Below are positions 617-28,509 of a DNA stretch of 64,000 bases, one piece after another; position 1 is the stretch's first letter, and the number at the start of each line of letters is the position of its first letter. Location of the stretch: contig CDRNVI010000043.1 in assembly GCA_977017575.1 (NCBI GenBank), forward strand, positions 558,001-622,000, in the 5' to 3' direction. The translations under genes were made by a program, and so were the position numbers. The stretch comes from Paramoeba atlantica. Taxonomy: Eukaryota; Protista; Discosea. The notes beneath the pieces are model-generated. The model searched no databases and had not been told where the DNA came from. It worked only from the letters and a program-made list of their open reading frames with translations.

Positions 617-1113
617 CGCAAGTATGCGAGTGCTATGTGAGACTTGAGAGAAAAACTTGGATCGTCCCATAATAAGGAGCATAGTCTGCACATTCCAGAA
701 AATTTAATCCAAGATGAAAGCGGGCCGATAGGTGGCTTAGAAAGGGAAGTTAAAGGGGACGGCGAAGACGGTAGTGAAGGGGATAATGGAGGGATAACGA
801 AGGGGGCTATGATGGGGATGATGAAGAGGACGATGATAGAGACGATGAAGCTAACGAGCTCCGACTCCTGCCTTCCAATTTCGTCCGTAGAACTCCACGC
901 AAGACCATTCGCCTAAAAATAGAGCAGAAAAAGAAATACATACAGTATGTAGAAGTGAAATAACCCCCCCCAATGAAACGTGACCCACCCCTTTTTTTCG
1001 TACAAGTGTCCGTTTGAGCTGATTTTTGTTGCATTTTGCAGATCTCAACACAAAGACTTTGGGCGAGAAGGAATGAAACTAAAAGAAGCGAATAAGTATA
1101 ATTTAGAGAGAGA

Positions 1114-1462
1114 TTACCATTTTGTCACTTTTTCGCCGTTCAACTTTATACACTGTTTAAGGCGAGAGTCAAAGCTTAAGACCGTTTTGTCGCTCACTTT
1201 TTGAGGCAAAGAAGACAATTCTTTACGTACACATCGGATAAGTGAAGGCTTGTCCGATGGGGTTTGTTCGTCCACTGCCTTTTGAACCATAGACCAGACG
1301 TTTTCTATGGGGGAAAAGTCTGGTGAATTGGGGGGGCAGTTTTTCAATACATCTTTCATTCTACTTGTAATGTAGTCCTTAGAGGCATGGGCGGTGTGCC
1401 GTGGCCCCATCCTGTTGAAAAATACAATTCATGGGGAAAGTTACCCTTTTGAGCGTCTCTAT
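1114..1462 (-). pseudogene. Tc1-type transposase, C-terminal fragment (frameshifted)
   Basis: IETLKRVTFPMNCIFQQDGATAH, then a frameshift into ...PPNSPDFSPIENVWSMV..., the Tc1 DDE C-terminal motif. Confidence 0.85.
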
Positions 1463-1748
1463 GGAACCCATGCAGTTTTGGCTCGCAGTGGCTGGCAGCG
1501 TTTGACAGCGTACGGCAGCATGTGGCAGCGTATGACATAATTTTGAAAAAAAAATGACATATACTAATTATTGGTCGGACTTTTATTTGAAAAATTAATA
1601 TTTCTACTAGATTCCTTTCGTTTACAAGAACAAAACATTTTATTGATCGTGTCAGAGGAGTACGTTCAGGTTGGAAGGGATAGATTTCCACTGCGTTACT
1701 GTGGGACATGCGATCAAAAAAACCCTTCACTCTATTGAGTCCGAAAGC

Positions 1749-2297
1749 ATGTTTGTATTGCGCTACAAACTTCTCGTGGAGAAACCGGTGGAGAAACTTC
1801 CCGACGTGATTGCGGAAGTGGAATCGTGCCTTTCGTGTGGGTATGCGAACGTACCCGTGAGAGCTGTAATATGCCCCCAATGCCACAGGCGCAAGAACGC
1901 GGAACTATTGACTCACATGGATAAGGAAAAGCTTCGTTCTGCGGGACTGAATGTTGAAAGCGCGCAACGCGTGTGCTGCAAATACGCAAAATACATGTTG
2001 TGCGGGAAGCGCCTAAGTCCTTCAGATGTGGCTTACATCCTTTGGCAAATTGAGATGTCTCGTCAGGCCAGGCAGAATTGTAGAAGGGACGGCTCGTATA
2101 TCCGAGCGGCTCGTAGCTTAAACTCTCACTTTTTTCCGCACGGGATTCACGCAGACGATGAGCGAGTCACATCTAATATTCAAAAAAAAAATGTGTGGGT
2201 GGCCTATGATAAAGTATTTTTCGGACCCCAAGGGGCCTTTTTGTGTCGAAAGAATGGTGTGGTTGGAGTCGCATTCTCTACCCAATACGTTCGGTAG
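1749..2297 (+). CDS. Cargo ORF inside the Harbinger-like element, with a CxxC-x11-CxxC zinc-ribbon-like motif
   Basis: ATG at 1749 (open frame from 1671); CLSCGYANVPVRAVICPQC; the last ~30 codons run into the 200-bp dispersed repeat. Confidence 0.4.
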   Translation: MFVLRYKLLVEKPVEKLPDVIAEVESCLSCGYANVPVRAVICPQCHRRKNAELLTHMDKEKLRSAGLNVESAQRVCCKYAKYMLCGKRLSPSDVAYILWQIEMSRQARQNCRRDGSYIRAARSLNSHFFPHGIHADDERVTSNIQKKNVWVAYDKVFFGPQGAFLCRKNGVVGVAFSTQYVR

Positions 2298-2412
2298 GCT
2301 TTGCTTCATCCCTACGAGTCATTTCCCACACGCAAATATCAGATTTAGTGCTCTGAGAGCAAAAATACCCAAAAATGACCCCATTTTTATCCGAAAATCG
2401 GCTATTTTTGGC
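2211..2412. repeat. Dispersed ~200-bp repeat, copy 2
   Basis: ~90% identical to 350-551. Confidence 0.9.
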
Positions 2413-2451
2413 CACAATCTTTCCGTTTTCTTCAGCTTTCCAGGCCAAATT

Positions 2452-2566
2452 TTCTTTTTTAGGCTCTTCGTTAAACGCGGTGGTAGTTTTCCACGCGAAG
2501 CGCGCAGCATGTGTGACTTCTAAGTTGAAAACAACCACCGCGTTTAACGAAGAGTCTAAAAAAGAA
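2452..2566. mobile_element. Small foldback/MITE-like element, family L copy 1
   Basis: ~43-bp inverted arms TTCTTTTTTAGGCTCTTCGTTAAACGCGGTGGT... / ...ACCACCGCGTTTAACGAAGAGTCTAAAAAAGAA; further copies at 39827-39932 and, partially, 24143-24182. Confidence 0.8.
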
Positions 2567-2737
2567 TTTAACTATTAATAGTACAAAAACCACTTGTCTA
2601 CATGTTCGGGTAACCAGCTGGTTTGGCTTCAGGGAGAGAGGCCCTCAGAGGACGTTTTTGGCTCGCAGTGGCTGGCAGCGTGTGGCTTGGCTGGCAGCGT
2701 GTGGCACTGGCTCGCAGTGGCGGTCTGCATGGGTTCC

Positions 2738-3010
2738 TATGTAGGACATACATATGTACTCGTGATAGACGAGTCAGAATCCAGAATAACCAAGTATCTC
2801 CACCCTACTCCTATGGCACCCCCAACTTGATATCTTGGCGCCCAGCGTACTTTTCGACGCGGGGCTGCTTTTTGACTGGGTGCTACCCGCACATTCGCGA
2901 AATGGCTTCCTTTTTGACACACCCTGACCGTCTCTCATCCTTAACAAAAGCTTTCCGCTATTCGTAAGCCCCCCTTTCGGTAGCCGAAAAGGAGACTTCG
3001 GCATTTTTCC
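2738..3010 (-). pseudogene. Tc1-type transposase, N-terminal fragment
   Basis: MPKSPFRLPKGGLTNSGKLLLRMRDGQGV matches MTKSPYRLPKGALTDSGKVLLKMRHAEGV of copy 2; VGWRYLVILDSDSSITS matches YLVILPNDTSITS. Confidence 0.75.
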
Positions 3011-3235
3011 GAAAAAATGAAGTTTTTCAAAAAAAAAAATCAGTTTTTTTAAAGATTTTAAAAGAGCTGAAAATAGCGGGAACGTACAGATCTCAAAATT
3101 TTGAACGATAATGTGGTGCCGTAACCCCCCTACACCCCCCTGTGCGAAAAACAAGGGTGGGTCACCTATTCGTTGGGGGGGGGTTATATGTAGAAATTTC
3201 GCTTCTAATTTTTTAAATTTGTCACTTTTTTTAAA

Positions 3236-3344
3236 GCGACAGATAACTAAGGGGCGTGGTCGACGGAAAAAATGTTCGACGGGCCGAAAAGCGACAGATA
3301 ACTAGGGGGCAGTGGGGGGGGGGTGACAGATAACTAGGGGGGTA
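3236..3344. repeat. Array of G(T/C)GACAGATAACTAGGGG motifs (transposon-end family F)
   Basis: Three copies at 3236, 3291 and 3323, ending GGGGGG-TA; the same motif array occurs at 25417-25620. Confidence 0.75.
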
Positions 3345-3516
3345 CAGTAAATTATAAATTTTCGGCCCTGTACTTATTAAAAACTTCCTACCAGTATGAA
3401 ACAGTACCAGGTATTGTATGCCAGATCCCATGCTGCCTCGGACCCTTGTGTGTCATGCTTTTACCGGATTCAACCTGTCCTTGTTGCTATATTTTTCCAT
3501 TTTTTACTGTATCTCC

Positions 3517-3810
3517 ATGGAACCACAAGCAACAAGGCCATATGCGTCACAGGACCCTACTACGGAATCACGTGACGTGACCGAACCTACGACATTCATT
3601 ACTATGCAACCCTGTTCCCCGGATTCCAAAGTAAAAGCATGCCGCTCAGCTGATAATATTGGCCGAAGTGCTCATGACATGCCAAAATGCAATATTGTCC
3701 CGTCTGCGCTACAGCTTTACTATCCACCCATGTCTCACCTCAAACTTTATTCAACGGTTCCAAAAAAGAGCGACCCGGTACCTACGACGATGGATTGGTC
3801 GGATTTCTAA
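3517..3810 (+). CDS. Possible small Ser/Thr/Pro-rich hypothetical protein, opposite strand to all other host genes
   Basis: ORF only (MEPQATRPYASQDPTTES...); no recognisable motif. Confidence 0.15.
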   Translation: MEPQATRPYASQDPTTESRDVTEPTTFITMQPCSPDSKVKACRSADNIGRSAHDMPKCNIVPSALQLYYPPMSHLKLYSTVPKKSDPVPTTMDWSDF

Positions 3811-4386
3811 TTAGTTTATACGTAGCAGCAAAAGAGGTCGCATAAATGCACTGCATATACGTGTGTAAACACGCAATTACATGTGTTTCATATGTAAATT
3901 ATGAAAATATGCAAAAATAAACGGTTCTCTATGTTTCTATCATATGAACGTAAACAATGTAGCAATCCGATATTCGGCAATGGGGGTGAGCCCTGATCAT
4001 CCAAGCCAATGAAAAGGTAACAAGCACAAAGTACGCGATTATCGTACAGATCAAAATGATTGCCTTGACTTCAACTATGCGTGTGAAACGTATAGAGTTC
4101 ACTCATTTTTTCAACATATTACATCAGCATAAAAGATATGCCATATTTTTTCAAGTAGCCGACTTACACGTCAATATTGGATATTCAAATAAAAACTTTT
4201 TTCAAATCTATCGAATTTATAACATCTACAATGGAAAATATGAATAATCTAAATTATGGAACGTGATTCAAATCAAGTAGCATCAATACATCGCGAAATC
4301 CGAGTTTCACATGATCAATACAAAAACTCAGCAACGTGGTTAAAAAACAATGCAAAATACACGACGACAGGTAACAAGTAGCTGGG

Positions 4387-6363
4387 CTATTTTTTCTCTT
4401 CCGAAGAACCCTCTGACTCTGGTTTCGCTTCCTGTCCTTCAGTGGAGTTCGAAGACGTGGAACTGGAACCGGTGGTATTCTTGGCGGCAGCTTGCTGATA
4501 CTCCGTACGCCCGCACTCCATCACAGCCTTTTGTAGTTTGTCCGTGGCCGCTTGAAGCTCATCCTTGCCCGAATTCGCATTGTCCATGCACGTGCGTAGT
4601 TCAGAGACAAGTTTGCGCACGTTTTCCTTCTCTGCGTCACTAACATATTTCCAGTCTCCTAGTTGACGTTCAGCTGTGTTGAGTTGTGTGTCCGCATTGT
4701 TCTTGCATTCAACTAGATCGCGCTTTTTGCGATCCGCTTCGGCGTGCATTTCTGAATCCTTAATCATTTGCTGTACTTCGGAGCTAGAAAGGCCACCATT
4801 CGCCTGGATAGTGATGTTTTGCTCTCGTCCTGTAGCCTTATCCTTGGCAGTGACGTGGCAGATGCCGTTGGCATCAATGTCAAAGGTGACTTCGATTTGG
4901 GGTACGCCACGAGGTGCGGGAGGAATACCTACCAAGTCGAACTGCCCAAGGATTTGATTATCCGAGGCCATTTCACGCTCCCCTTGAAACACCTTGATAC
5001 CCACCTGTGTTTGGTTGTCAGCGGCCGTACTGAACACTTGGCTTTTCTTAGTTGGGATAGTAGTGTTCTTGTTAATCATCCGAGTAAAGACGCCACCAAG
5101 AGTTTCAATTCCTAGTGAGAGAGGGGTCACGTCAAGCAATACCAAGCCTTTTACTTCACCGCGCATCACACCTCCCTGAATGGCTGCACCTACTGCAACA
5201 ACCTCGTCGGGGTTGACACCTTTAAAGGGCTCTCGGCCAAAAAATTGCTTCACGACTTCAACTACCTTCGGCATTCGGGTCATCCCTCCCACCATGACGA
5301 CCTCTTGTACACCTTTCGCATCAACACCCGCGTCCTTCAGACATACTTTTACGGGGCCGATGCTCCTCTGGACAAGGTGTTCAACAAGGCCTTCAAACTT
5401 GGCGCGCGTAAGATTCATTTGAATGTGCTGAGGACCTTCGCTGTTCGCGCTGATGAAGGGAAGATTGATTTCGGTTTGCGTCGCCGAAGACAGTTCACAC
5501 TTGGCCTTCTCCGCTGCCTCTCGAACACGCTGCAGAGCCATCTTCTCTTTCGAAAGATCAATTCCTGTAGATTTTTTAAAGTCGTTCAGAATGTGATCTG
5601 TCAAAAGTGCGTCGAAGTCCTCTCCTCCCAGGAAAGTGTCTCCATTTGTCGCTTTCACTTCGAAGACGCCGCCGGCAATCTCAAGAATTGAAATATCAAA
5701 TGTACCACCACCCAAGTCGTAGATAGCAACGATGCGATCCTTTTCCTTGTCCATACCATACGCAATAGCAGCGGCCGTCGGCTCATTGATGATGCGGGCA
5801 ACATTTAACCCGGCAATCTGCCCTGCATCCGTAGTCGCAGTACGCTGTTGATCATTGAAATAGGCCGGGACAGTAACTATCGCGTGCTTTACTTTGCGGC
5901 CTAGATGACTTTCCGCAGTCTCTTTCATTTTTTGTAAGACAAACGCACCAATTTGTGACGGAGAATACCGCTTGCCGTTAGCGTCCTCGACCCAGGCATC
6001 ACCATTCGTGTGTCGTGCAATCTTGTACGAAACCATCTTCTTGTGCTTTTCTGTCATAGAATCCTCAAAGCGGCGTCCGATCAAACGCTTAACCGCGTAG
6101 AATGTGCTCGAAGGATTCGTCACCGCTTGGCGTTTCGCTGCGTGACCCACAAGCTTTTCTTCGCCCTTAAAGGCAACAATGGAGGGCGTCGTCCGCATAC
6201 CCTCGGCATTCTCCAAGACACGGGGCTTGCCTCCTTCCATCACTGCCACACAGCTGTTGGTCGTGCCTAAATCAATACCTATGACGTCTCCGTCAAGCTT
6301 GGAAGTAGCGTACTGACGAATACCGGCTAAGGAAAGCGAACCAAGGGAGCGGCGGACAAGCAT
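4387..6363 (-). CDS. mtHSP70: Mitochondrial Hsp70 (DnaK-type)
   Basis: [31 protein letters not shown]; short Arg-containing presequence (MLVRRS); C-terminus [11 protein letters not shown]...[21 protein letters not shown] resembles kinetoplastid mtHsp70. Confidence 0.97.
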
Positions 6364-6489
6364 CGTTATGGAATCAGAAAAGTTAAGTAAAATTGAGCTG
6401 AAAACTTAAAAAGTATATGAGAAGTCATTTAGCGCATTAGGTTAAAATCATGAGATCGATGGCTACGAGAAAAGAACGTGTACAAAATT

Positions 6490-7530: not shown

Positions 7531-7572
7531 TCAGCTTTGGACTCCTGCAGTTTAATCTCAGAAGTGACGAAG

Positions 7573-8252: not shown

Positions 8253-8747
8253 CTCATCGTAAAAACATCATAGAATCGTATCTGGGTTTCCAAGCTCTCA
8301 GAATACGGTTTGGCAATCTATTTTGAAAAAATACTTTTTAACTTTTTTTTCGGTAAAAAAATATTTTTGGGGAGCAAAAAATCCAAAAAAAAAATCCAAA
8401 TCATTCCGGATTGCTCCGGACGGTCACTGGCAAGCCAGACCCTTCACAGACAGATTTGGAAGTTCCGAGGCCGACGTCCTCGACCAGTTTCCGCCCGTCC
8501 AAGGCGGCACCAACATGCTGTTACCAACACCCTGCGTCGACGAATTGTACGTCAACACGGCTTACCCAAGAGGTGTAAGCCGGGTAAGGGAGCTGGTTCC
8601 CTGAGGGGAGGGTCCGGGACGGTCCTCCGAGTACTGGGCCTAGTCGGTTCTCAGCCCAGCCTCTTAGAGTGAGGCCGCCAGGAATAATGCGATGAGTGGG
8701 TTTGAACTCGCTATCTGAGCATCATGCGCTTCAAACTTTGAATTCTT

Positions 8748-8786
8748 GCCATCCAAAGATCCTCGTTCCACACGTTTTTGACCCTG
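8748..8786. mobile_element. hAT family E fragment, left of the nested hAT insertion
   Basis: gccatccaaagatcctcgttccacacgtttttgaccctg matches 28044-28082 in the family E copy and resumes at 12354. Confidence 0.75.
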
Positions 8787-8841
8787 CATAGTCTAACTAG
8801 TATACTAGTATATACTAAAACACTAGTATTCGGCTAGTATA

Positions 8842-9622
8842 CAGGGGGGATCACCAATATCGGGACACCTCCTATTTTTGGGCTGTGGGTCCGTTTCACC
8901 TGATTTTTGTTGCAAAAGAGAGATCTCGACGCGAATATGATCGGAACGACATTTTGCGCCTATTTAAACACACTTGTAAAAAATGGTATAAAAAAAATAA
9001 AAAAAATCTCTAAAAAATATGCAAATTTATGTAAGAATTGTGCAAATCCCGTTAAAATTGTCTGTTAAAGGATACAATTCTCTTTTATTGCACCGGGTCA
9101 TGGGCAAGCCCGTCGTGCGGGATTGCAAGCAGGCCTAAACATTATTGATTGGCCCTCAAAGTCACCTGACTTAAACTTGATAGAAAACTTGTGGTCAATC
9201 ATGGATGACTACATTCATAGTTCTTTGCGTCCGAAAAATAGGCATGAATTGCGAGAGGCCATACCCAAGGCTATTGAATGTCTCCTAACCGAAAAGCGGG
9301 ATATCCTAGAGAAGACTCTGAAGAGCCTCCCAAAACGGTTAGAAAGTGTAAGTGAGTTACGGAAGTGTAACGGAGGGGTTATTTCATACTAAATAATTTT
9401 TTCAATGCTTTTTAAGACATTTTTATCCACATTTTCAAATGTGCAAATTTTGAAAAAAATCGTTTTTGTCGTACACACCCTACTTTTTAGGTGTGTTTCA
9501 ATAGGCGCAAAATATCGTTCCGATCATATTCGCGTCGAGATCTCTCTTTTGCAACAAAAATCAGGTGAAACGGACACATGGCACAAAAATGGCGGGTGTC
9601 CCGATATTGGTGATCCCCCCTG
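8842..9622 (+). mobile_element. Tc1-like element, family B, internally deleted (781 bp)
   Basis: 132-bp TIRs starting CAGGGGGGATCACC, TA TSD (8840-41 / 9623-24); internal ORF 9123-9392 has DWPSKSPDLNLIENLWS. Confidence 0.92.
9123..9392 (+). pseudogene. Tc1 DDE transposase, C-terminal remnant
   Basis: IIDWPSKSPDLNLIENLWSIMD...LREAI...LPKRLESV...NGG motif. Confidence 0.85.
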
Positions 9623-10481
9623 TATACTATAGTATATACTATGAGATACTACTTTTTTGTAGACTGGGTATTTACTAATCGTAATCAACGGACGCATGGA
9701 AAACCTCAAGCAATTCAACGTTCAAGGCAAAGGAAGCAGGAGAATATGCTGAATGCTTCATTCTCCAACAGTTACTTAACAAATCAACCAATAAACTTCC
9801 TTAAAAATCAGGAATTGATTTAGTTTACCACAGCGCAGATGCGCACAGAGAGGTGAAAGGATGCTTATCCTGAGCGAAAGTTGAGTCGAGTGCGTGAAAA
9901 AGTGAGTTGAGGGGTGAAAGGAGTTCAGATCTCGCATTCCGCGCATAAACGCTTCCTCACATATTTTTCATTGGTATATGATGTAAGAAAAGAAACAGAT
10001 CAAGAGCGTGTAGCACGAATATACGAATAAAATTAATATATTGTAGTGTAATAAAAAATACTAAACGTGGCTATTTTCATCAATGCATAAATATTTATTT
10101 ATATGTTATTCTGAATTGATAAAGATACCTGAAGGAATACTTCAAGGACTTACACGACACTGAGTTAAACCACAGAACCCAGTTCCGACGTCAATACATA
10201 GTGCATAATAGTACAATAAACCGTTGCTGTGGACGAAAAAAGTATTTCGCTTGTTGAACACTGAGAAAAAAACCAGAGAAAAATATCTCAGATACGGAGA
10301 AGAAATACCACAAAACGGAGCTCTGGACGTACGAATATTATCGCAATATTACCACATATTCTATTTACCGCAATTCAATTGATATTTACCGCAATGTATA
10401 CCCTGTATGCTACGATACTCTATATGTATGATACTCTGTGCGCCATGTAGTTCGATATTATTTTATATGGAGTGTTCCGCG

Positions 10482-12106
10482 TCAGATCCAGTAGACAATT
10501 AGCCATCGCGTGACCCCGCCAAGTTTGGGAGAAGTGACGGCTCGAATTTCATGAGAATGTGCAATGGATTTCACCACACTAGAACCTTTCGCAATTAGAA
10601 TCTCACATTGGTCTTCTATTTCCAGAGCTTGATTCAGTTCGGCAAACACATCGCGTGCCTTTAAAGATACTTTCGAGAGAGTTTGCAATGCTTCCTTGAG
10701 ATGAGCTATGGTGTCCCTGCGACCCCTCTTGTCAAGTTTTTCGCTGTTCACAGAACGATAAAAAGATTTAAAGTACGATTCAGCTTTTTGAGTCTCTTCG
10801 TCAAAGGCGCTTAATATATCTTCAAGAGCTTTTCCGAAATACTTCCCCTTCTTTGCCCCCACACGGTCCCCTGCATAGAAAATCCTGGAGAAGTATGTTC
10901 TTACTTTCATAATTTGCAGATTTGCGTAGTGCTGCATTGCATCTTTGGCCATATTATGAAACAAGTGTCCGAAGCATGGTAATAGCGCGACACGTGGACA
11001 GTGCTTCGTCACGCCAATTACAATGTTCTCTCGGTCCGTGCTTCCGATAGAGCTGAGGCGCGAGTAAAATTCTTCCTCTGCGGAAAGAAGAGAGTCACGA
11101 ATGCCTAACATAGTGGATTCTATTTCCTGCCTAGCCACATTATTTACTGGGGCTCCGTCTGCCATTATGAATCGCAACTTTAGGAGTCGGCTCTCGGAGA
11201 GGCATGACCGAAGTACTTCTATCAGGGATTGTGCCATCTCGCTACCGTTAAATGATTTGTGCTTAGGGTGGTAGATAGGTGGGAGAATAAAGTGGCGATC
11301 CACAACATACAAAATGGCGATAAGTACATGTTCGCTAAGAACCCTGTCAACTCCACCGTCGATGGCGAGGACAAAGAATTTAGCTCCATCTATGGTTCGT
11401 CGAATGTCTTCCCAGATCATGTCGGCAATTCGACGTTCACTGATATGAAATTCGCGAGGAGAAGGAAGGATCGATGCAGCTTCTGAAGGATGTATGTCGA
11501 GGGGAAATTCTTGAAATAAGTTCTTTACGCACTCGAGGAATCCTTCGGTAGAAAGATTGCTCTGAGCTGCGAAACATGGGAGAGCTTCGGAGATGTACTC
11601 CTCTAGCGACTTGGGATTTGCAACTTCACTGGAGTCTTCTATCCCCTGCTGCGCCTTCGAGCAGCACTCTTTCAAATGTTTATAACAAAAATTTCCCCCT
11701 TGCTATGGGTCACCCACCCACATACTTTACATCGAACATGCTGTGAGTGGCCCATAGCATCATTCCGGATGCCTGAGACGTTTTTCCGAGCCCACTCGAG
11801 GCACAATTTTCCAGAAGACTCAACGCCGAGATCGCATCGCTCGTACGTTAATTGCTGCTGTCGACGGAGGCTTCCACAAGCGAGTGGATCGTTCCCGCAG
11901 TTGCTTTTTCTCTTTCTCTGGAGAGCATTCTCCTCTTCAAGCGGAGAGAGGGACGCACTTAACGGTACTTGGGAAGGTGTCTCCTCTAACTGTGACGTAA
12001 TTGCGGATACTCTCTCGCGATGCTCCCGTGCTGACGGTCGCTTTCTTGTGTTTTCAGGGGTGGGGGTTGAAGGTGCGCTTTCCGAGTTCTTTGAACGTTG
12101 CGTCAT
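10482..12106 (-). pseudogene. hAT transposase with BED-type zinc finger, frameshifted near 11675-11700 and C-terminally truncated
   Basis: Joining the two ORFs gives CKVCGWVTHSK...KHLKEC (Cx2C...Hx3C); FVLAIDGGVD (D1), FIMADGAPVN (D2), PCFGHLFHN (CxxH), GVTRW; no catalytic E or dimerisation domain visible. Confidence 0.75.
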
Positions 12107-12353
12107 TTAAAACAGTGAGTGACAAGGTGATTAAAGGAAGTGATAAGGTGTAAACAAAAAGGCTGAGCAATACTTGTGTACCAGTCCTAAATGTCGCAAT
12201 AAAGACAAATCTTTCCATTCATATACAGGGAAAAACTACATTTCTATAGACACTTAATAAGATTATAGACACCTTCGAAAAGTAGTATCTCATAGTATAC
12301 ATAGTATTGTATACTATAGTATATACTAAAATACTAGTTAGACTATGACCCTG

Positions 12354-12660
12354 AGTGCTTCGCATCCACTCCTCAAAATTTAGGTCATGACTCTTTTTTC
12401 AAGTGCGTGAGGGCCGAGGAGTAGGAGACTCGAAAAAAAAGGGTTTCTTCGCGCCTGCTTCGCAGACTTGTCATTTGAAATTATGCATCACGAATTTTAA
12501 CAAAGTGTAAAGCAACAAACTCCGCCTGGCTTTCGTCGTTCCGTCGCATATTTGGTATTTCTGAGAAATAAAAAAAATAAAGTTTTATATACATGTACAG
12601 TATTTAAAATTTTATAGTACTATAAAAGTACTATAGTTTTTAAAGTTTTAGGGACCCCTG
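12354..12660. mobile_element. hAT family E fragment with right terminus
   Basis: Homologous to 28082-28313 and ends in AAAGTTTTAGGGACCCCTG (reverse complement of the CAGGGGTCCCTAAAAC TIR); no matching left end found. Confidence 0.8.
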
Positions 12661-12778
12661 AAATAAATGACAAAAAATTACGAGTTTTTAAATGTTAGGG
12701 TGCATTTTTGCCGAAATACTGCCCGAATGTTTTCGTACACCACTCTCGCAACAACTTGCAGATTACAATTCAGAACGG

Positions 12779-16079: not shown

Positions 16080-16411
16080 ATCCCTTCGGGCATATCCCTT
16101 TAGGCAGGGAAGGGGCGAATGGTGCAGGTATCCTGTTTCAAGAAGTTATGGATGCTTTTGAGACTCATTGGCGCAACACTCTTGGAGTCTCAATCTGTAC
16201 GCTTCAGGTGGATTGCGTAATCCGTGCAGTGCGAAGGTAAACTTGTTCTTGACTTTCATCAACACAAAGACATCTCTACAACCAGGCCAGCTATTGTTAC
16301 TTTTTGGGGACATCGCCAGTAGTCCTTGTGCTGGTCAAATTGACCGAGGCAGAGGACTACACCACAAAATCGTGTCCAAGTTCATACATGATTAGGAATA
16401 AATTTGGTTTG

Positions 16412-16600
16412 ATGCAGGTTGATGAAATCTTCATCGAGAAAAGGAAATATCACCATGGAAAGCGATAGCGGCATATTGTAGTTCGTCGGCATGACTGAGA
16501 TAATCGGACGGGAAATCGGCCGCACCCGTTGGAAGTTGTTTTCCTGCAAAGATCCAGAAACACTTCACGCATTCATCGGTCCACATCTGTATAGTGCGCG
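16412..16600 (+). pseudogene. Merlin/ISXO2-like transposase remnant 1
   Basis: MQVDEIFIEKRKYHHGKR matches the Merlin V(Q/E)IDES.FGKRKY..GR motif; stop and frameshift follow. Confidence 0.7.
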
Positions 16601-17341
16601 TTAGACTCATGAAGGGTTGCCAGACGTGTTAGTTTCGGCTTTCGTGTCTTTCTTGTCCGCCTTCTTCTTCAAACGGCCTGCCTTGAGCAACCTCCTCGAC
16701 ATGAAGAATCCATAAATATCCTCGACGTAAAGAAAATCGGCTTGGGGGTACGTTGGTTGAATTCTCAACGAACGGGATTCCGATTTCTGAAGTCATAAGA
16801 ACTGCGGGGTGCGCTCAGAGAGAACTATGTCTGCCACTTCCGCAGGATTGTGTATTCGTTTTCCTGTACTGCGACACGTAGTTTACGTGGAGGCAAGGCC
16901 CAACTGTGAGCGAAGCCCACTTCTGGAAGCAAAAACCCCCTTTGCGAGCAAGGCCCTACTGTGAGCGTAGCCCTGGGACAGAATTATATTTTTGTGGCGA
17001 TCCGCGTGCTCCAGTGTGTGGGTTGCGCACTGAGAACCTGTGTCTGCCACTACCGCCGGATTATATTTTTTGACTATAGAATATCTCCACTTTTCCTTAC
17101 GATAAAATTACATTTCTTTTTGTATCCCTCTGCTTTTCTTCGTTTACCATGGAACTTCGTCTGCTATGAAAGAAGACTATAATGAACAAGACCGACACTC
17201 TCCTGAAATTAATGAGGCCGAGCGACTCATGATGGTGTTCCTTGAGGCGATTGATCGTGTCGTAGAACGTGTTCTACATGAGACAGCATCGCACGAAAAT
17301 AATCCAGAACCTCATATTCAACCCGTTCTTCAAAACGGAGT

Positions 17342-18085
17342 TTGGCGAAATTTGCATGCCAGACGACTTTGCTCGCGGTGTGCCGGATTGTTTGCGTTCG
17401 GGGGTGGCGAATCATTGGCTGTGCTCCGCAAGGGGAGAATGCGGTAACCTGGATGAGATCACATAGCCTGTTTGAAGATGCCGTCTGTTACTTTCATGGG
17501 GCGGACTATCTCCGAGATATGCCAGGAAAGCCCGATATGATGGTTTGCGACCACCGTCTTCCGCATGAAACCTGAGTCGGGCCCGAGTTAGCAAATTCTC
17601 TCCATTCCTCTCCATACGAACATTATTGACACCTTCCATGCTCTTTCTTCTTTGGGCAGACGCCGCGAACCATTTATGTACTGGGCAGATTTTCCAGAAC
17701 CGTGGAGTGCAACGAATGGTAGCGCAGAAAATTAGCCCATCGCTTGGCAACTCAGCCTTGCATGAGGAGGAGACTTCGAACTACTAATTTGCCAGGATGC
17801 AGGTTGACAAGACGTTTATTGGGAAACGGAAGTACGATCGTGAGACGCGTCAGCGCGAAACAGGCTACTGGTTCGCAACAGATACTGAGCAAGAAGGAAG
17901 AATGATGGGTCTTACCCACTGTAAATTGGTAAAGACTCGGGATCGTGCGACATTGCAAGCTTGGATTCTGTCTCATTTGGCGAGCGCACGCACAGTAGTA
18001 GTGAGTGATGCTGGAAGGCTTATACTAACCTCGGTGAGTTCTGCCGACTTGGTTCATCATACGCTCATTGGCGCAGAGAGATCCC
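17342..18085 (+). pseudogene. Merlin/ISXO2-like transposase remnant 2
   Basis: MQVDKTFIGKRKYDRETR...YWF...RDRATLQAWILSHL...VVSD; a -1 shift gives SDxWKAYTNL; upstream Cys-containing fragments HWLCSARGEC and MRSHSLFE. Confidence 0.75.
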
Positions 18086-18895
18086 GGTGAAACTGAACCA
18101 AATTCCGCACTTTTTCTCATTTTTGCAAAATAATTTTTTTTACCAAAGATCTGTCTTTCTTTGATATTGTTTTCACACAAACATAAACTATTGAAGCGAA
18201 TGTCGTGCGAATTTAGTTATTTCTAAACTACTTATCGCTTATTTTAACAAGATGATGCCCTATTTATTGCCTATTTAATACCGTGCTCTGGAGATGTGGG
18301 TTCTTTTGTGGGTGCACCCTAACGATTACATTAATATCTTCGTGAAGTGAATCACAGTGCTCAAAGTGGCTTAAAGATCATCACTTAACCCCTCTAGAGG
18401 GGATACATGATCCCTCTAGAGGGGTACAGGGATGACTCTGGGTGGGCAGTACGTGGTCTGAGATCCTGTGGAACCCGTGGAAAATCGTTCGGTCGATACT
18501 CCCATCCTCAACATCATGGAATTGGAAATCGTACCAAGATGCGGACTAATGGAGCACGGCACAACTTTTCGCCCCAAGGCAAGTACAAGTGGGAGAGTGT
18601 TAGCCACAAACGGCAGTGGTCTACAACTCAAGAAACTCACACCACCACTGGAATCCGCTAATTCCATGGTTAAGCAGAGGTTCAACAGTGAACAGAATCC
18701 AAATCCTCGCAGAGAAATGCACAGGAATTTTGAAGCGAATTTTGAAGAGAATGAGGACAATGTATTGCTCTAATTATTGCTAAATTTGAAGGAGTAGTGT
18801 GCCATCTAAGCAAGAAAAAGGCTCAGAGTTGATGAAGGATGAAATTTTTCGTGAAAACGTTTTGGAGAAAGTGTGGAATTTGGTTCAGTTTAACC
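18086..18895 (+). mobile_element. Internally deleted Merlin-like element with ~33-bp TIRs, apparently inserted in remnant 2
   Basis: GGTGAAACTGAACCAAATTCCGCACTTT / AAAGTGTGGAATTTGGTTCAGTTTAACC inverted pair; internal degenerate fragments PVENRSVDT, YKWESVSH, LESANSMVK; no clean TSD. Confidence 0.6.
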
Positions 18896-19299
18896 GATAT
18901 TCCCCTTAATACAATGGACGGTATCATCGGTACATGATCCGCCCATAACGGATGTCGCCAAAGGGGGTTCGACACGGACTCTGTCGGTAGAGAGGTCCAG
19001 GCAACTCGCCTCTCTTTACGCGGCCGGAGGGGCGCACTTCAACCAACCACTGCCTCGCGATAATGCAAGGCAGTCACGCCCAGTGGTTCTCAAGGGAGGC
19101 CACCATGGTGCGTAGCTCCCAGGAGAAAAAAACGCGAGAAGGAGAAAGCCAGGGAGGGAAGTAACCTTACTCGAGGAGTGAGTCGGGGAGCGGTGAAGAG
19201 TTGGAAGTACATCCCCTACTTCCACGACAAGAGGTACAGTCCCTGCTAGCCGTCAGCCGGGCTTTTAAAAAGAAAATGTATGCCCGTTTCCGGGAAAAG

Positions 19300-19619
19300 A
19301 AAGGAAGGGCTAGCAAAATGTACCAACAAGGTACAGAAATTGTATCTTTATCATTAACGTTTATGCTATGGATCACAGCAAGGAATTTTTCACCTATCAA
19401 GGGTACCACACCAATCATGCGGAGGGTGTGCACGGTACCTTAAAGGGGTGGGTGAAACGGCAACACTACAACTTCGGTTCGAAACCTATGGACTTACAGC
19501 GAAATGTCACCCTTCAGTATGTAAAGTTTGGAAACATACATCACGCTCGTGAACAGGCATGGCACCTCCGCATGCAAAACATTATTCTTTGCGTCAAAAA
19601 GCCACTACGGTGCATTTAA
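19300..19619 (+). pseudogene. Merlin/ISXO2-like transposase, C-terminal remnant
   Basis: QGTEIVS, then DHSKEFFTYQGYHTNHAEGVHGTLKGW (the VNHS...HTN.IEG.W..LK motif). Confidence 0.7.
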
Positions 19620-20873
19620 TCGCGATTGGAATGGGGAAGATTTGAGTGAGAGTAGCGGGACCGATTCGGAATGAGAAATTTTTAATGGTTTCGGTTTAGT
19701 ACTCAACGAACTCCCGGATTTTCGTTGAGAACTCAAAGAACGTATCCCCAACCCAAATCGGCTATCAACTTCAACATAAAGAAAATCAACATACTGTGCC
19801 CCCCCACTTATAGTGCCGCGGTTTTCGACCAAACGGCACCATAAGTGGGATGGGGTAGTATGTTTCAGGTCGAGTATCAAAATTTTCCCCCTCAAAAAAC
19901 TTGAATGAGATAAGTACAACCCCCAGGAATCCTGTGGAAGTCACAATTAGTGGGGATTCTATGAACCCGATGGGCTGTGTACTCATCCGCTACAAGAGCT
20001 GTCGCAGGTTGCGAACCTCCAAGTAAGGAAGATTGATCGTGCATGATCTCTTCAAATACTTGACGGTTCATCCAACCAGTCGAAGTTACGTACACCTTCA
20101 AAGCGTTGTCGAGCGTCCGAGCAACATGACGTCGAGCGTCTCGCAGTATGCGGGACTTTTCATCTTCTGCATTGGACTTGAGCAGTATCGTAGGAGGAAG
20201 GGGAAGAGCTTTTCTGTTGTGAACATCGTAAACACCGGAAAGAAAAACAGTTATACTTTCCTTGTCGTTTGTGGTTACGGCTTGCACGTTACGAAGCCCT
20301 ATGGGAGCCAATGTTACTCCCGTATTTTCACCATCAACGGGAAGAGACGTTTCATCCCCAAATATCACATACGCGTATGAACGGACTTGATTTTGTATGT
20401 AGAGCTGCCGTGCCCAAGCTCGTATTCGCGAGCCCACGTCGGAAGGACCCACGTAGTGGACACGTCCAAATCTTCGGTTTGTCCACCCGAAAAGACGCTT
20501 GAAGCGCTTGTATATGCGTTCCTTCGTCTCATCGGCAAAGCTTTGAAAAGCTGTATTCCGTATGTTTCCATAACGGAAAAGACGAATGCCTTCGTTACAA
20601 CATGTTTACCATTGACTTCTTGGAGCAATTTAAGGTGCACTTTCCTTAAAATTGCCTTCCGCTCTTTGTTAAGTCTCTCTGGCGCTTTCTTCACTTGAGA
20701 CCACGATTAGTACGTGATTGATAAAAAGAGGCACCGTTGCTTTTAATACTTCGGACAGTTCTTAAACTGATCCGATACTTTTCGCTCAGCCTTTTTGTGT
20801 CCAATTCGCTCAGACACACATTCAACTTCTCTTGCATAGTCAAACACACTCTAGAGGTCCTAGGTGTGCTCAT
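19605..20873 (-). pseudogene. pogo/Tc2-like (DDE_1) transposase, multiply frameshifted
   Basis: N-terminal LTMQEKLNV...LSEKYRISLRTVRSIK (psq/CENP-B HTH); IFGDETSL...TLAPIG, KESITVFL, LPPTILLK, GWMN...F, LVADEYTAH, IPGGCTYLIQ. Confidence 0.8.
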
Positions 20874-21353
20874 CTCTAGAGGCTCATCTCTAGGACTCTA
20901 GAGGTCCTAGGTGTGCTCATCGGAAGAGAATCAAGTGTGTTGGGGGGAAGACGGCTGGCCACCGGGGGACCAATTCTCGGCGCTGGCGGAATCACCGTAA
21001 ACCAGCGTCCCAAAGGACCTGAAATCGCCGATCCACGAGTGTGCGCTTTGTCTAGCGTCTCGTTCTCGTTCGAATCGACAGTCATTGAAAGGATAAAGGG
21101 AACTATTAATAAAGTTTCAATGATTTCGATAAAAGAAAATATTAAAATTTTACGCTACATTTACTCTACCTTTTTGGTAAAAAAAATTCCCGTCTACTAT
21201 AAACCCAAAGGGGGCGGGCATACCTAAAACTTTAATAAAGCAAAATGTAGTTTTTTCGCGAGTTAAAATGACGAGGATTCGCCAGATCATGCGAGAACAT
21301 GTGAGATCTCTCCGGAGCGGATTTGGCACGCGAGGGTGGTTGGACGCGGGGAG

Positions 21354-21715
21354 AGTCAAGGAATATTGCATAAGTCAAGGAATATTGCATAAGCCGTAAA
21401 TTGCTTATTTTTGTTTCCTCATGCGCGAGCGTCGGGTGAATTGGTTTATTGAAGCTTGTGACGACTTTAATTGCATTGAATATTTCTCTTTAAACAATTT
21501 TGGAGAAATCAGTGCTGCCCTAGGGCTTCCCTGGCTCATCGGCCCGGCCGGCCCCTCGGTGCGTTCGGCCTCAAAACAACTTGTATTCCCCAAAACAACT
21601 ACCTTCCCCCCTCAACTCCGAGAACTCACCGGGAGCAGGACAGAAGTGCAAGGGCTTTAATTTCATTGGTCCTGACTTATGCAATATTCCTTGACTAATG
21701 CAATATTACTTTACT
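21354..21715. mobile_element. Inverted-repeat element with 42-bp arms, each built from two 19-bp units
   Basis: AGTCAAGGAATATTGCATA x2 at 21354-21391; inverted, slightly degenerate pair at 21674-21715; no TSD seen. Confidence 0.6.
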
Positions 21716-21932
21716 TTGGCCGTTGGACGCTGTCGAAACGAGTTCACGTGAGACCACGCGAGATCATACCCGCAGCCCCTCATGTGTAAACAAGCGAACA
21801 AACTTCTGCTAAGCAACATACGGTAACACGAAGAAATATTGTACAAATTTTGTATTAAGTGGGAAACTTAAAGTTCAAGGAGGAAATCATTCTAAGAATT
21901 TCCGAGAAGAATAGTGAAATTCTTTAAAAGGG

Positions 21933-22487: not shown

Positions 22488-22869
22488 TTTAAAAAATAAG
22501 ATGAAAAAGAGCGTTAGAATTAGGCAGTAGATTCTATACTTCGATAATTTAAGCTAAGATTTAGAATTATTTTTACTTCGTCAGGCATGTACATGGATAT
22601 AGGCATGTACATGGTACGTGTATGCATAAACGCATACGTTTATAAATACTCGGGACAGATAACAAGGGGGGACACTAAAAAGAAAATGCATCTGCAAGTA
22701 AAGCATGCTTATATACAGGGGAATCATGGACGCTTCTCCCTCAGGAAATGAATTGAGGTGTGTTGATGCTAAAGGATATATTGAAATACAGTACATGGGA
22801 ATTATTTGTTGCAATAAACTCAAGCCGGAACATGCCGTCAAATTGGACACCCTTTTCTTTCAAAATTTC

Positions 22870-24033: not shown

Positions 24034-24142
24034 ACTACAGATGAATGGTTAATTACAATGTAATTTGTTTTTTATGCTCTCTGGCAAACATGGTGGTTCC
24101 TTTCAGCTTACAGAAGAAGGTACCACTGCTGTGCACTTCGCA

Positions 24143-24182
24143 TTGAAAAGTACCTCCGCATTTACCGAAGAGTCTAAAAAAG
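24143..24182. repeat. Degenerate right arm of MITE family L
   Basis: ttgaaaagtacctccgcatttaccgaagagtctaaaaaag vs ttgaaaacaaccaccgcgtttaacgaagagtctaaaaaag (5 mismatches in 40). Confidence 0.6.
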
Positions 24183-24277
24183 ATGGCAAATATCAAGAAT
24201 AATTCATTTTTTGGGTGAAAATACTAGATTTTTTTGCAGTCGGCGAAAATACATGTCTGAAACTCGTCTACCTAAGC

Positions 24278-25275
24278 TCACAATGCCAGCGCTACGTTAT
24301 CCATCACGAAATGAGATAAAAATGCTTCAGCGAAGTTTAACAGGCGCCGTAGCGCATGCACATATTCACGGATTGATGGATTGTTCATCCAATGCTTTAA
24401 ATTGACAAATGCAATTTTTTCGCGACTTACCTGGGAATGTGCGAGAGATAGAGAGACTCCGAGTGGCCAAGGGTGATTTCCAATGGAAAGCTGAAAATAC
24501 CTTTGGTGAGCCTCCACGAAATCTTGGTTTGGATAGATGGAATATAAAATGGAATAAAAATGTCGAACGAGTTCTTCGTTCGTCCTGCCCGTTTTAAGAT
24601 TCACAAGAAGGGGAAGTAATGATTTCTGCGTTTCTAAAAGTTTTGCGCCACCTTTGAATTGAGAAGTGTATTTCGTGTGATGCCCTTTACAACCTTCAGA
24701 AGCGCCGAAAAAGTCAAGAATGTGTGACTGAATCCAGGCGGACAGAATAAAGCATATAGAATGTAAAACATATTTTTCTTTTTCTTCGGTGAGTTGGATT
24801 CCTTTTTCATCAATCGAATCTTTTGTGTTGAGGAATGACCTTTTGTCGTCCCGAGGTACAGACCTTACGAATCCATCAAGCTTTCTTTTGGAAGTCGTTA
24901 ATACCTTCTCTGCAAATTGAGACGACACAGTATCGCTTTTCACTTCGTAGAGGTCACAAAGAAAGTCTTGTAACTCTTTATCAAATACGGGGGCGTATCA
25001 AATACGGCTTTGGGCGTCCTTTCAATGTCATGATTATCTTCAGTGGCATTTCTAAATCCTACTTCCCCTGTATGCAAGTCAGACGGTGATAGACACGAGC
25101 GCACTTCCTTAATAGATCCGTCACAGATTTCATCACACAGATCAATGTTCAACGTGTTCGAGCTGGAAAGATCTTCAATTTTAGACAAAGTCGAAACTAC
25201 TTTTAGATCCGGTTGATTCGGAGACGGTTTCCGCCTCTTCAACGCGCGCGACTGTGATGATAGCTCGGACCACAT
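24278..25275 (-). CDS. PRP18: Pre-mRNA splicing factor Prp18, split into two frames by a 17-bp duplication
   Basis: YFQLSIGNHPWPLGVS...SREKI...HWMNNPSIREYVHALRRLL is the Prp18 signature; the only upstream ATG is at 25275 in another frame; TATCAAATACGG repeats at 24979 and 24996. Confidence 0.8.
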
Positions 25276-25382
25276 ATACCATATTTCTTATTTATTTGAA
25301 AATAGCTTTTGAATAATGAAAAAGAGTACAAAAAGTGGCAAAATTATCTTTAGTATTCTTCATGGTACAGGTGGAGATGTAC

Positions 25383-25567
25383 TTACGGCAGTCTTTATTT
25401 ACGGATAATATTACTGTACTCCCCCCTACTTATCTGTCACTACTTTTCGCGAAAAGGTGACAGATAACTTGTATTTACGGCAGTCTTTATTTACGGATAA
25501 TATTACTGTACCCCCCCTACTTATCTGTCACTACTTTTCGCGAAAAGGTGACAGATAACTAGGGGGG
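25383..25567. repeat. ~92-bp tandem duplication, each unit holding a hairpin; the second unit has a complete 57-bp family F mini-MITE (25511-25567)
   Basis: TA|CCCCCCCTACTTATCTGTCAC-TACTTTTCGCGAAAAG-GTGACAGATAACTAGGGGGG|TA. Confidence 0.8.
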
Positions 25568-25633
25568 TAGGGGTGTGACAGATAACTAGGGGGATCAGTG
25601 TGCGACAGATAACTAGGGAGGGGCTCTAAAAAA

Positions 25634-25748
25634 GGCGGTAAATCTCTTCGCTAGGAAGACGAGGTCTCTCCAATGCTGCAAAGATGAGCAAAAACGGATC
25701 AAAAACATCAAAATTCCGAGGGGGGGGCAAGATCAACTGAAACCACTG
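25634..25748 (-). mobile_element. Solo Tc1-like terminus (family C, related to D)
   Basis: Ends ...GATCAACTGAAACCACTG|TA; subterminal block homologous to the D TIR. Confidence 0.7.
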
Positions 25749-26586
25749 TATAGATGTTCATGGCCCCTGGCATTCAAGAACAAGTAGCTGCGGCGGCCGC
25801 AGAATCGGATACGAACTTAGGTTCCAAAAGAAATTCATTTTCTTCCGAGGAAATGGAAAGTGTTGCAGGCCGCGCGTAGTTTTCTCCGTCGCAACAACAT
25901 TGGTGTATTCTCCCGTACAATCCCGAAAATAATATCTTCAAATTTGGGCTTCCTGCAAAACTTAACGAATCAGATAAAGCTACATATAACCAAGATGAGA
26001 AAAACTTATTTACAAGTGGATTCATGTACGGATAAACTATTTAAGGATAAAATCGCCAATTTCTTATCCTTTATCCGTAAATAAATATTTCCGTAAATAT
26101 ATCTCGGACGTAAATACAGTCCGCGTCATATTGATCCCCCCCTCAGGAAAGGTTAGTTTTTTTATCCGATTTTGCTCATCTTTGCAGCATTCGAGAGATC
26201 TCGTTCCCGTAGGAAAGTATTTTGCCGTAATAAAACGTAAGGAGGGGGGGCGCCCCCTGGAGAGAATCCCAAACTTAGGAAACAACAGAAAAAGTTAGGA
26301 AAATGACAAAAATGATGTGCGATCGCCGCGTAGCTACAAAGCTTTTTTTCTAGGAATTCGCATTTTTCATGTAACTAAAGGTATTTTTAAGGGATTCAGA
26401 CGGGGATACGTGCCGTTTCGGCCTCTTCGGGGTGCTGGAAGAAGAAGTCATGAAAAAATAAGCAATTTTTAATCTATTCAAAATTTTATTAAAAACAATG
26501 TGTTTTTACTATGTATGGAAATTATTTTCCATAATTTCGAAGTGTCTGGCTAAAGGGTAAAAACCAGGGGTCCTTAAAACTTTATA

Positions 26587-27518
26587 AACCCCCGCTCACG
26601 AATAAGTGACCCCCCCTTATTTTTAGCACATGGGGGCGTGGGTGGGTTATCATACCACTGTTTCGTTCAAAATTTCGAGATCTGCACGTCCCCGCTGTTT
26701 TTAGCTCATTTTAAAATTTTAAAATTTAGTCAAAAAAAATAATTGGCTTTTCAACTTTTTTTTCCAAAAATGACCAAATCACCATATCGGCTTCCAAAAG
26801 GGGCGCTTACGGATAGTGGTAAGGTTCTTTTGAAGATGAGACATGCAGAAGGTGTTCCGATAAAACAATTATCCCGTGATTTTAACGTCTCTAGAAGGAT
26901 AATCAAAAAATATCTGAAAGAAAAAAAATCTAGCGGGGAATACACTTTGAGTCCTGTGGGTGGAGGTATTTGGTTATTCTACCAAATGACACATCTATTA
27001 CAAGTAAGACGTACATAGAAACATCAAAACAGGTAGATTTCCCCCCTAATAGTGTATTTCAACAGGATGGGGCAACGGCACATACTGCCCGTGCCTCCAA
27101 AGAGTATATTGAGAATCGAATGAGTGATGTTCTAAGAAACTGGCCCCCCAACTCGCCCGACCTTTCCCCCATAGAAAACGTCTGGTCTATGGTCCAAGAG
27201 GCGGTAGACGAACAAACGCCATCGGATAAGCCTTCACTTATCCGATGTGTACGTAAAGCATGGTCTTCTTTAACTCAAAAAGTGATCGACAAAACAGTAT
27301 TAAGTTTTGATTCTCGACTTAAGGAGTGTATAAGATTGAAGGGCGAAAAAGTGAAAAAATGTTAATTCTTCTCTAAATTGTGCGTATTCGTTTCTTTTTG
27401 TCTCATTTCTTCACGCGCAAAGTCCTTGCGTTGAGATCTGCAAAATGCAACAAAAATCAGCTCAAACGGACATTTGTACGAAAAAAAAGAGGGGGGTCAC
27501 TTTTCGTGAGCGGGGGTT
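26587..27518 (+). mobile_element. Tc1-like family A copy 2, internally deleted
   Basis: TIR AACCCCCGCTCACGAA(T)AAGTGACCCCCC, TA TSD at 26585-86 and 27519-20; transposase pieces at 26770-27365. Confidence 0.9.
26770..27365 (+). pseudogene. Tc1-type transposase lacking the first catalytic Asp region (D35E spacing)
   Basis: HTH-like N-terminus (IKQLSRDFNVSRRII) joined out of frame to FQQDGATAH...WPPNSPDLSPIENVWS; 35 residues between D and E. Confidence 0.85.
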
Positions 27519-28509
27519 TATATATAGTTTATAGTATTTCAAAAAAAATTATGGTACTATAAATGGCATTTATAGCACTATAAATACTTTAAAGTGTTTG
27601 AGAAACTTTATTTTTAAGGGAGGCTAAAAGGGGTTCAAGAAGCCCAAAATTGTATTGGATGTTGTAAGGGGTGATCATCTCAGGGGCCTGGCGTTCGGCT
27701 CGCAGTTCCGGGGTTGAAAACCCTTTTCTGAGATGGCAGTCTCAGGGAGACTCCATGTTGAGGGTGTCAAAAGCTTGCCGAGAACTAGTTGGTCGGCGTC
27801 TGTACCATCAGTGAGATGACAGTGTCAGGGAAGACTACGAGAAGGTCCCGACCCTGCTCCCCATGTTCAGGGTGTCAAAAGCTTAGTAAGTTGTTGATCG
27901 TACTTTCCCCAGGGACACAGCGCAGTCCCTTCGTAAGAAGCCACTTAAGGTTTGGGTCCTGCAAAGCAGCATTGCTAACCCCATGATTGATTTTCCATAG
28001 GAGGTGTCGCTCAAATTCCTGTAATTGTGGTTTCACGGTGAAGGCATCCAAAGATCCTCGTTCCACACGTTTTTGACGCTGAGTGCTTCGCATCCACTCC
28101 TCAAAATTTAGGTCATGACTTTTAGTTCAAGTGCGTGAGGACCGAGGAGTAGGAGACTCGAATCCCCTTTTAGCAAAAAAAGGGTTTCGTCGTTCCGTCG
28201 CATATTTGGCATTTCTGAGAAACAAAAAAAATAAAGTTTTATATATAGTATTTAAAAGTTTATAGTACTATAAAAGTACTATAATAAAAGTTTTAAAGTT
28301 TTAGAGACCCCTGGTAAAAACAGTGGCAAAGTACTTTCCTATGGGAACGAGATCTCTCGAATGCTGCATAGATGAGCAAAATCGGATAAAAAAACTAAAA
28401 TTTCCTGAGTGGGGGATCAATGTGACGAGGACTGTATATCTCGGACGCACACATAACTGTATTGTCAAAGGTTCGAAAACATAACTGCCATTTCAAAATA
28501 GTACAACTA

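Follow-up and report, generated by a model that had tools for sequence, protein, structure and literature searches.

The window studied here is a 64,000-nt stretch (positions 558,001 to 622,000 of contig CDRNVI010000043.1, in assembly GCA_977017575.1, deposited as Paramoeba atlantica). It is very probably a transposon-rich piece of a kinetoplastid nuclear chromosome, in which class II elements have inserted between genes read from a single strand and into each other, and whose host is a relative of the free-living Prokinetoplastina. We also consider it likely, with less assurance, that this early-branching kinetoplastid keeps a diverse, still-moving class II mobilome comprising Tc1-type, pogo, hAT and Merlin elements and a Harbinger-related lineage with 4-bp target duplications. 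Transposase domains, inverted ends, target duplications (TA, 8 bp and 4 bp), multicopy families and presence/absence differences between haplotypes are all found. There is nothing exceptional about the kinds of element; the unusual points are the lineage of their host and the signs of recent activity.

About half of positions 1–28,500 of the window is transposon debris, lying between intronless genes on the same strand. All gene-like open reading frames (ORFs) of at least 150 aa in the window's ORF list lie on the minus strand and are uninterrupted, the longest reaching 2677 aa, which bears out the intronless, unidirectional genes described in a first-pass annotation made from the sequence alone. 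Genes are tightly packed from ~28.5 kb on; between 1 and 28.5 kb they are spaced by blocks of direct and inverted repeats.

Six-frame Pfam scans over the whole 45.7-Mb assembly returned transposase domains of every group discussed here, many of them in open frames of 300–900 aa. In the following list the pogo and Harbinger-type counts are upper bounds for the kinetoplastid, because some of these matches lie on contigs of a second organism.

DDE_3 (Tc1/mariner): 676 candidates; 150 were scored, and 150/150 exceeded the cut-off.
DDE_1 (pogo): 106 matches.
Dimer_Tnp_hAT (hAT): 18 matches at E <= 1e-5.
DDE_Tnp_4 (Harbinger-type): 82 matches.
DDE_Tnp_IS1595 (Merlin): 147 matches.

Elsewhere in the genome many copies have uninterrupted transposase frames of 340–900 aa, and members of the window's families turn up in DNA searches on more than 40 low-numbered contigs. 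The first-pass annotation had counted at least five superfamilies. Their domains are confirmed, although the number drops to four if pogo is counted in Tc1/mariner, where the Wicker scheme places it, and Harbinger is barely present in the window.

Tc1-like elements are the most varied group in the window, where four families (A to D) with TA duplications had been proposed; DDE_3 scores, TA flanks and inverted ends uphold all four. Three fragments are Pfam-significant for DDE_3, with 27–41 bits: 1117–1428 (minus strand), 9069–9389 (plus) and 26934–27362 (plus). Searching with genomic Tc1 ORFs by tblastn recovers pieces at 1117–1462 (minus), 2749–2886 (minus), 9090–9389 (plus) and 26901–27359 (plus). 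TA target duplications are present at 959–3189, 8843–9621, 26583–27522 and 26114–28437, in families A, B and C, and CAGGGGTCC is the fourth Tc1-like end type. The individual elements are as follows.

959–3189, minus strand: family A copy 1, with an internal deletion, a 1.3-kb insert at 1464–2757 and TA on both flanks.
26583–27522, plus strand: copy 2 of family A, a deletion derivative of 940 bp with a TA duplication (inverted repeat I12).
8843–9621, plus strand: family B, a 779-bp non-autonomous element with ~180-nt inverted ends starting from CAGGGGGG and a TA duplication (inverted repeat I2).
26114–28437, unstranded: shell of a family C element, its 113-nt inverted ends beginning CAGTCC, with TA on both flanks (inverted repeat I4).

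Copy 1 of family A is 72–83% identical to the genomic Tc1 ORF L001 by tblastn and has DNA matches to L001 and L004, while copy 2 scores 41 bits for DDE_3 and shares 78% amino-acid identity with L001. Family B has ~10 genomic copies at 85–98% identity in a DNA search, and the family C shell contains other nested elements. In the genomic Tc1 ORFs, both DDE_3 (65 bits) and HTH_Tnp_Tc3_2 exceed the Pfam cut-offs. Copy 2 of family A lies 17–19 bp inward from the end of an element of the CAGGGGTCC type, and at 26566–26583 and 26089–26113 Tc1-like copies occupy TA sites 17–19 bp inside the ends of other elements. The 1.3-kb insert in copy 1 has 29-nt direct repeats near both of its ends, and its 208-aa ORF (1671–2297) has no significant Pfam match.

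The window's hAT element and a miniature inverted-repeat transposable element (MITE) both carry 8-bp target duplications.

8787–12345, minus strand: hAT element, with 31-nt inverted ends (repeat I15) and the 8-bp duplication TGACCCTG on both sides.
21348–21722, unstranded: MITE of 375 bp that interrupts a smaller MITE and has a perfect 8-bp duplication, TTGGACGC (inverted repeat I9).

Without its nested insert the hAT element measures 2.8 kb, and the C-terminal third of its transposase is gone. What remains of the frame (10503–11684 plus 11699–12103) aligns to residues 2–481 of a 773-aa genomic transposase at E 2e-75, and a DNA search finds at least 10 genomic copies at 97–99% identity. The dimerization domain, Dimer_Tnp_hAT, is deleted from the window copy and found on genomic ORFs of 773, 898 and 386 aa. 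An empty paralogous site of 8 bp lies at 28074–28081, defined by the inverted ends I15 and the repeats D13/D7: the repeat that the element interrupts survives whole at 28045–28162, with one TGACGCTG. The corresponding empty-site joint (8778->12346) is also present in Logan contig data of run X1. As for the MITE, uninterrupted copies of its smaller outer MITE elsewhere overlap by the same 8 bp. The MITE is compatible with a hAT origin, although Merlin elements make 8-bp duplications too. Thus one of the two hAT families of the first-pass annotation is established and the second is no more than hinted at by this MITE, while its statement that the window holds several MITEs is correct, 21348–21722 being an example.

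Merlin and pogo copies lie between these elements, with other insertions nested in the larger Merlin copy.

16162–16601, plus strand: decayed Merlin transposase fragment, found by tblastn to the IS1595-domain ORFs of L017–L020 (E ~1e-21 to 1e-24).
17171–18047, plus strand: 5′ part of a Merlin copy, with in-frame stops; the tblastn piece 17378–18047 is 55% identical to L020 (E 4e-56).
19362–19616, plus strand: 3′ part of a Merlin copy, 57% identical by tblastn to L020 residues 307–385.
18085–18896, unstranded: 812-bp element with 32-nt inverted ends (I16), nested in the Merlin copy, with one 83% copy on contig C40.
19895–21188, minus strand: pogo-like copy with its 3′ end truncated, found by tblastn to the L008 ORF, including the helix-turn-helix part.

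The pieces at 17378–18047 and 19362–19616 are one Merlin copy split by nested inserts. The Merlin pieces of the window are 47–57% identical to a 410-aa genomic ORF (E down to 4e-56) on which DDE_Tnp_IS1595 scores 53 bits, over the Pfam cut-off. The 17171–18047 part itself gives a weak IS1595 profile match and has DNA kin at 83–85% on C2, C12, C103 and C37. The Merlin/ISXO2 fragments of the first-pass annotation are therefore real, three window pieces matching the IS1595-domain ORF. Also nested in this copy is a 460-bp unit (18897–19357, minus strand) that ends in spliced-leader-like sequence followed by GT; it has at least 30 dispersed genomic copies at 87–88% and is not a DNA transposon.

The pogo-like DDE_1 element that had been noticed is likewise present, as a truncated copy identified by tblastn: its pieces at 19895–20548 and 20745–20879 match the L008 ORF, which carries DDE_1 and CENP-B_N, at E 5e-13. 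Identity to the reference ORFs is 28%, and the CENP-B_N match is weak and below threshold. On the genomic pogo ORFs both domains exceed the Pfam cut-offs, and DNA kin of the window copy at 83–97% occur on C87, C211, C2, C55 and C6. The intact pogo copy L005 has TA flanks; the window copy lacks one end.

The Harbinger-type family is a different matter. A tblastn search with the genomic ORFs found no Harbinger transposase in the window, and the family's sole trace there is one terminus.

21765–21781, plus strand: solitary right terminus of the family of Harbinger type (DDE_Tnp_4), an exact 12-mer match with 0.09 expected by chance.

The same terminus occurs on the full copies among L039–L052. 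A 125-bp MITE around it has no recognizable matching left end. Elsewhere in the contig set there are full two-ORF elements of 2.5 kb with 14-nt inverted ends (GAGGGGCTGCGGGT), in which DDE_Tnp_4 falls on a 362-aa ORF (71.8 bits) preceded by a 216-aa ORF1 in which Pfam recognizes no domain, Myb/SANT included. Five full copies and several ends were recovered (L039–L052; C81, C62, C30, C44, C70 and C71), and four independent copies have 4-bp duplications (ACTT, ACTA, AAGA and AAAT), with A first in every flank read. The Harbinger-like element with a 3-bp duplication reported earlier in the window thus did not hold up: only one terminus is there, and the family's duplication is 4 bp. That duplication is a small addition to transposon systematics.

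The clearest signs of recent movement come from comparing haplotypes. From position 1974 onward the window and contig C19 are collinear at 98.4–99.4% identity, and we read C19 as the other haplotype; a 251-kb contig from ENA (L021) has the C19 structure. The family B copy at 8843–9621 is absent from both C19 and the ENA contig, which have a single TA at the empty site, and a Logan contig of run X2 also has this site empty (joint 8834->9630). Copy 2 of family A is absent from C19 and L021 as well. Conversely, these two contigs contain a 724-bp TA-flanked MITE at window position 2753/2754 that the window lacks. Alleles of this present-or-absent kind speak for movement after the two haplotypes split, and against chimeric joins. 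C19 also has 337 extra bases (445856–446192) at window 21188, which lack inverted ends and whose flanks match imperfectly over 8 bp, and window 1–1973 is not collinear with C19:424000–426752, the two sharing one 206-bp repeat.

Transposition may thus be ongoing, with intact copies as the probable catalysts. The elements would move by cut and paste, using DDE/DDD transposases of the Tc1/mariner type, pogo, hAT and Merlin, with Harbinger-type enzymes elsewhere in the genome. Autonomous copies with long open transposase frames, located elsewhere in the genome, would supply the enzyme, and most window copies would be deletion derivatives or MITEs mobilized in trans.

Several points weigh against this picture of a kinetoplastid with active transposons. 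No window copy has an intact transposase, and most are broken. Pfam run directly on the pogo, Merlin and hAT fragments of the window gave nothing significant, so the assignment of these fragments depends on their homology to intact copies elsewhere in the genome. The one RNA-like run showed no expression. C19 and the ENA contig may not be independent, since both may come from one set of reads, and no Logan contig is long enough to bridge a junction between transposon and gene. The host is placed by one gene, mtHsp70. Finally, the assembly is mixed, and some genome-wide matches belong to the second organism, notably pogo and Harbinger-type ones (C149, C177, C170 and probably C169).

Alternatively, the elements could be real but old, either immobile relics or domesticated genes like the Merlin of Perkinsela and Bodo saltans. 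The state of the window copies, each truncated, deleted or interrupted by stops, fits that explanation, as does the silence of the RNA-like run; the Merlin and pogo window copies are, moreover, just 83–93% like most of their kin. We nevertheless regard it as unlikely. Haplotypes no more than 1–1.6% apart differ by three Tc1-like insertions, the hAT copies are 97–99% alike, and many copies elsewhere keep uninterrupted frames of 340–900 aa.

The organism was placed with a gene in the transposon-rich region.

4387–6363, minus strand: host mitochondrial Hsp70 gene (mtHsp70), supported by its ORF, homologues and trees.

The encoded protein shares 88% identity with its counterpart in Prokinetoplastina sp. 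PhF-6, 79% with that of PhM-4, 75–78% with those of trypanosomatids and 69% with that of Diplonema. In an LG+C20 tree Kinetoplastea has support of 97/94, and the window protein falls in a 100/99 clade with PhF-6, PhM-4 and environmental sequences. The kinetoplastid host of the first-pass annotation is thereby supported and narrowed to the company of Prokinetoplastina. The exact protein is recorded in ENA and EukProt only, not in NCBI. Spliced-leader-like sequences of the kinetoplastid type occur in both the genome and the window. A database search with one orphan host protein gave a weak lead to Euglenozoa only.

Could the host instead be another euglenozoan with similar gene organization? The use of a single marker leaves some room for this, as does the canonical spliced-leader 3′ pattern, which has three genomic matches, each with one mismatch. 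However, the mtHsp70s of diplonemids and euglenids fall outside the 97/94 clade that joins the window protein to those of trypanosomatids, Trypanoplasma and both named prokinetoplastids, and we hold a host outside the kinetoplastids to be highly improbable.

The assembly also appears to contain other DNA. Strong piggyBac matches occur on 16 contigs between C137 and C242, many with in-frame stops resembling introns, and one MULE match lies among the C137–C242 contigs; the 16 contigs have 0 scored DDE_3, Merlin or hAT matches. A set with piggyBac and without scored Tc1, hAT or Merlin is compatible with a second eukaryote in the assembly. Such an organism might have contributed the window's transposon blocks through contamination or chimeric joins, and it lends that idea two facts: the confinement of strong piggyBac matches, often with in-frame stops, to C137–C242, and the presence of some pogo and Harbinger-type matches on contigs of this type. 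Yet the order of gene, transposon and gene is the same on two haplotigs and the ENA contig at 98–99% identity; the insertions have target duplications and empty-site alleles; no strong-piggyBac contig has a scored DDE_3, Merlin or hAT match; and the window's families are spread over the low-numbered contigs. Contamination or misjoining is accordingly extremely improbable.

A second role for that organism, proposed in the first-pass annotation, is as an amoeba host from which the transposons were acquired. A recent horizontal gain from the co-assembled, amoeba-like organism would suit the occurrence of both organisms in the same samples from 2015 to 2024 and of pogo-type and Harbinger-type transposases in both. 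The transposon sets tell otherwise. Tc1, hAT and Merlin matches are absent from the piggyBac-bearing contigs. The Harbinger of C169 (L013), the only one read from a contig outside the kinetoplastid set, has no BLAST-detectable similarity to the kinetoplastid-side L014 family, whose copies are on C30, C4, C9 and C55, contigs that also bear 97–99% copies of the window hAT. C169 itself (37.6% GC, no piggyBac match) was given to the other organism on composition only, and has one MITE-sized DNA match to a window repeat. In a search of 5.8 billion sequences, Tc1 family A has its nearest non-self proteins at 43–49% identity and Merlin at 39%. These separate sets and the dissimilar C169 Harbinger lend no support to transfer from host to kinetoplastid, which we judge very unlikely. 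Nor does anything point to an endosymbiotic life for the kinetoplastid. The contigs that carry its transposons total more than 20 Mb (as the sum of the highest coordinates seen); the Perkinsela genome is 9.5 Mb (PMC7859406).

The reading of the window as kinetoplastid chromosome bears on how DNA transposons are distributed in this group. Merlin in Bodo saltans and Perkinsela was reported as the first kinetoplastid DNA transposon (Lopes et al. 2021, PMC8101967), and a 2025 survey found no DNA transposons in 57 trypanosomatids (PMC12278014); the literature as summarized in the first-pass annotation was accurate on both counts. The Bodo saltans genome paper describes retroelements only (PMC4728078), a prokinetoplastid genome survey does not mention transposons, and a paper on a fish trypanosome gives an automated, uncurated figure of 0.15% "DNA" repeats. 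Nowhere in the literature searched are Tc1, pogo, hAT or Harbinger elements described for kinetoplastids, in line with the earlier suggestion that they may be undescribed for the lineage; a paper beyond that literature is possible. No transposase lies in the 48 kb surrounding mtHsp70 that were examined from two related environmental kinetoplastids, a sample too small to carry much weight.

The prior picture, from textbooks and recent comparative studies, was of kinetoplastids with retroelements only, relic Merlin being the sole exception, and hundreds of class II copies in one genome change it. First, if our interpretation is true, trypanosomatids became free of transposons by a derived loss, and the loss of class II elements is dated to within the kinetoplastids rather than before them. 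The study of Merlin had earlier made the case for DNA transposons in the ancestor of kinetoplastids (PMC8101967). Second, the region offers comparative material on how polycistronic, one-strand gene arrays tolerate insertions. Finally, the organism could, on the same condition, supply native cut-and-paste vectors for kinetoplastids, and its endogenous transposases might become genetic tools for these protists.

Other features of the window deserve mention. Genes for a UbiE methyltransferase, an mRNA triphosphatase and mtHsp70 lie within 5 kb in a distant relative (L055, a contig of ENA ERZ25072283, whose mtHsp70 is 84% identical); in the window the same three genes extend over 26 kb (4387–30180), with transposon blocks and other genes between them. 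A 375-bp repeat at 8375–8751 has at least 20 copies at 95% among the matches listed, some of them in tandem on C60, and its k-mer depth in three runs is 260 to 2800 times that of neighboring single-copy DNA. A 91–92-bp tandem duplication at 25378–25560 varies in copy number between haplotypes; it contains GACAGATAACTAGGGGG motifs, which are also present at 3235–3344 and 22651. Rfam and ARAGORN scans of the window gave no matches.

It is useful to set each group against its best-known relatives. The Tc1-like elements share with Tc1/mariner a DDE_3 core, a Tc3-type helix-turn-helix, the TA duplication and, in families B–D, inverted ends starting from CAG. They differ in the spacing from the second D to the E: counts by eye on two ORFs give 35 residues for family A and 32 for the L004 type, as against 34 in Tc1 itself; a spacing other than DD34E points to other clades of the superfamily. 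They also differ in that outside proteins are at best 43–49% identical and that copies often sit just inside the ends of other elements. The pogo elements resemble pogo/Tigger/Fot in their DDE_1 core and CENP-B-type N-terminal helix-turn-helix, and the TA flanks of L005 may be a further likeness; the truncated window copy, however, shares just 28% identity with the reference ORFs. With the hAT superfamily (Ac, hobo, Tol2) the hAT element shares its 8-bp duplication and short inverted ends, and genomic ORFs of 773–898 aa have the C-terminal dimerization domain; the window copy lacks the dimerization third, and its ends, as far as read, lack the usual YARNG start. The Harbinger-type elements are like PIF/Harbinger in having a DDE_Tnp_4 transposase, a second ORF and short (14-nt) inverted ends, but their duplication is 4 bp and starts with A, where the canonical one is the 3-bp TWA, and their ORF1 has no Pfam match to Myb/SANT. 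A further comparison is with the Merlin of Bodo saltans and Perkinsela (PMC8101967). The word-indexed protein search did not retrieve those Merlin proteins, but it works only through shared 5-mers, and a missing match there does not speak for absence. The DDE_Tnp_IS1595 domain is the same and the hosts are likewise kinetoplastids; there, however, copies are few, and Perkinsela's have neither terminal inverted repeats nor target-site duplications, whereas here there are at least 147 matches, many in frames of 330–450 aa.

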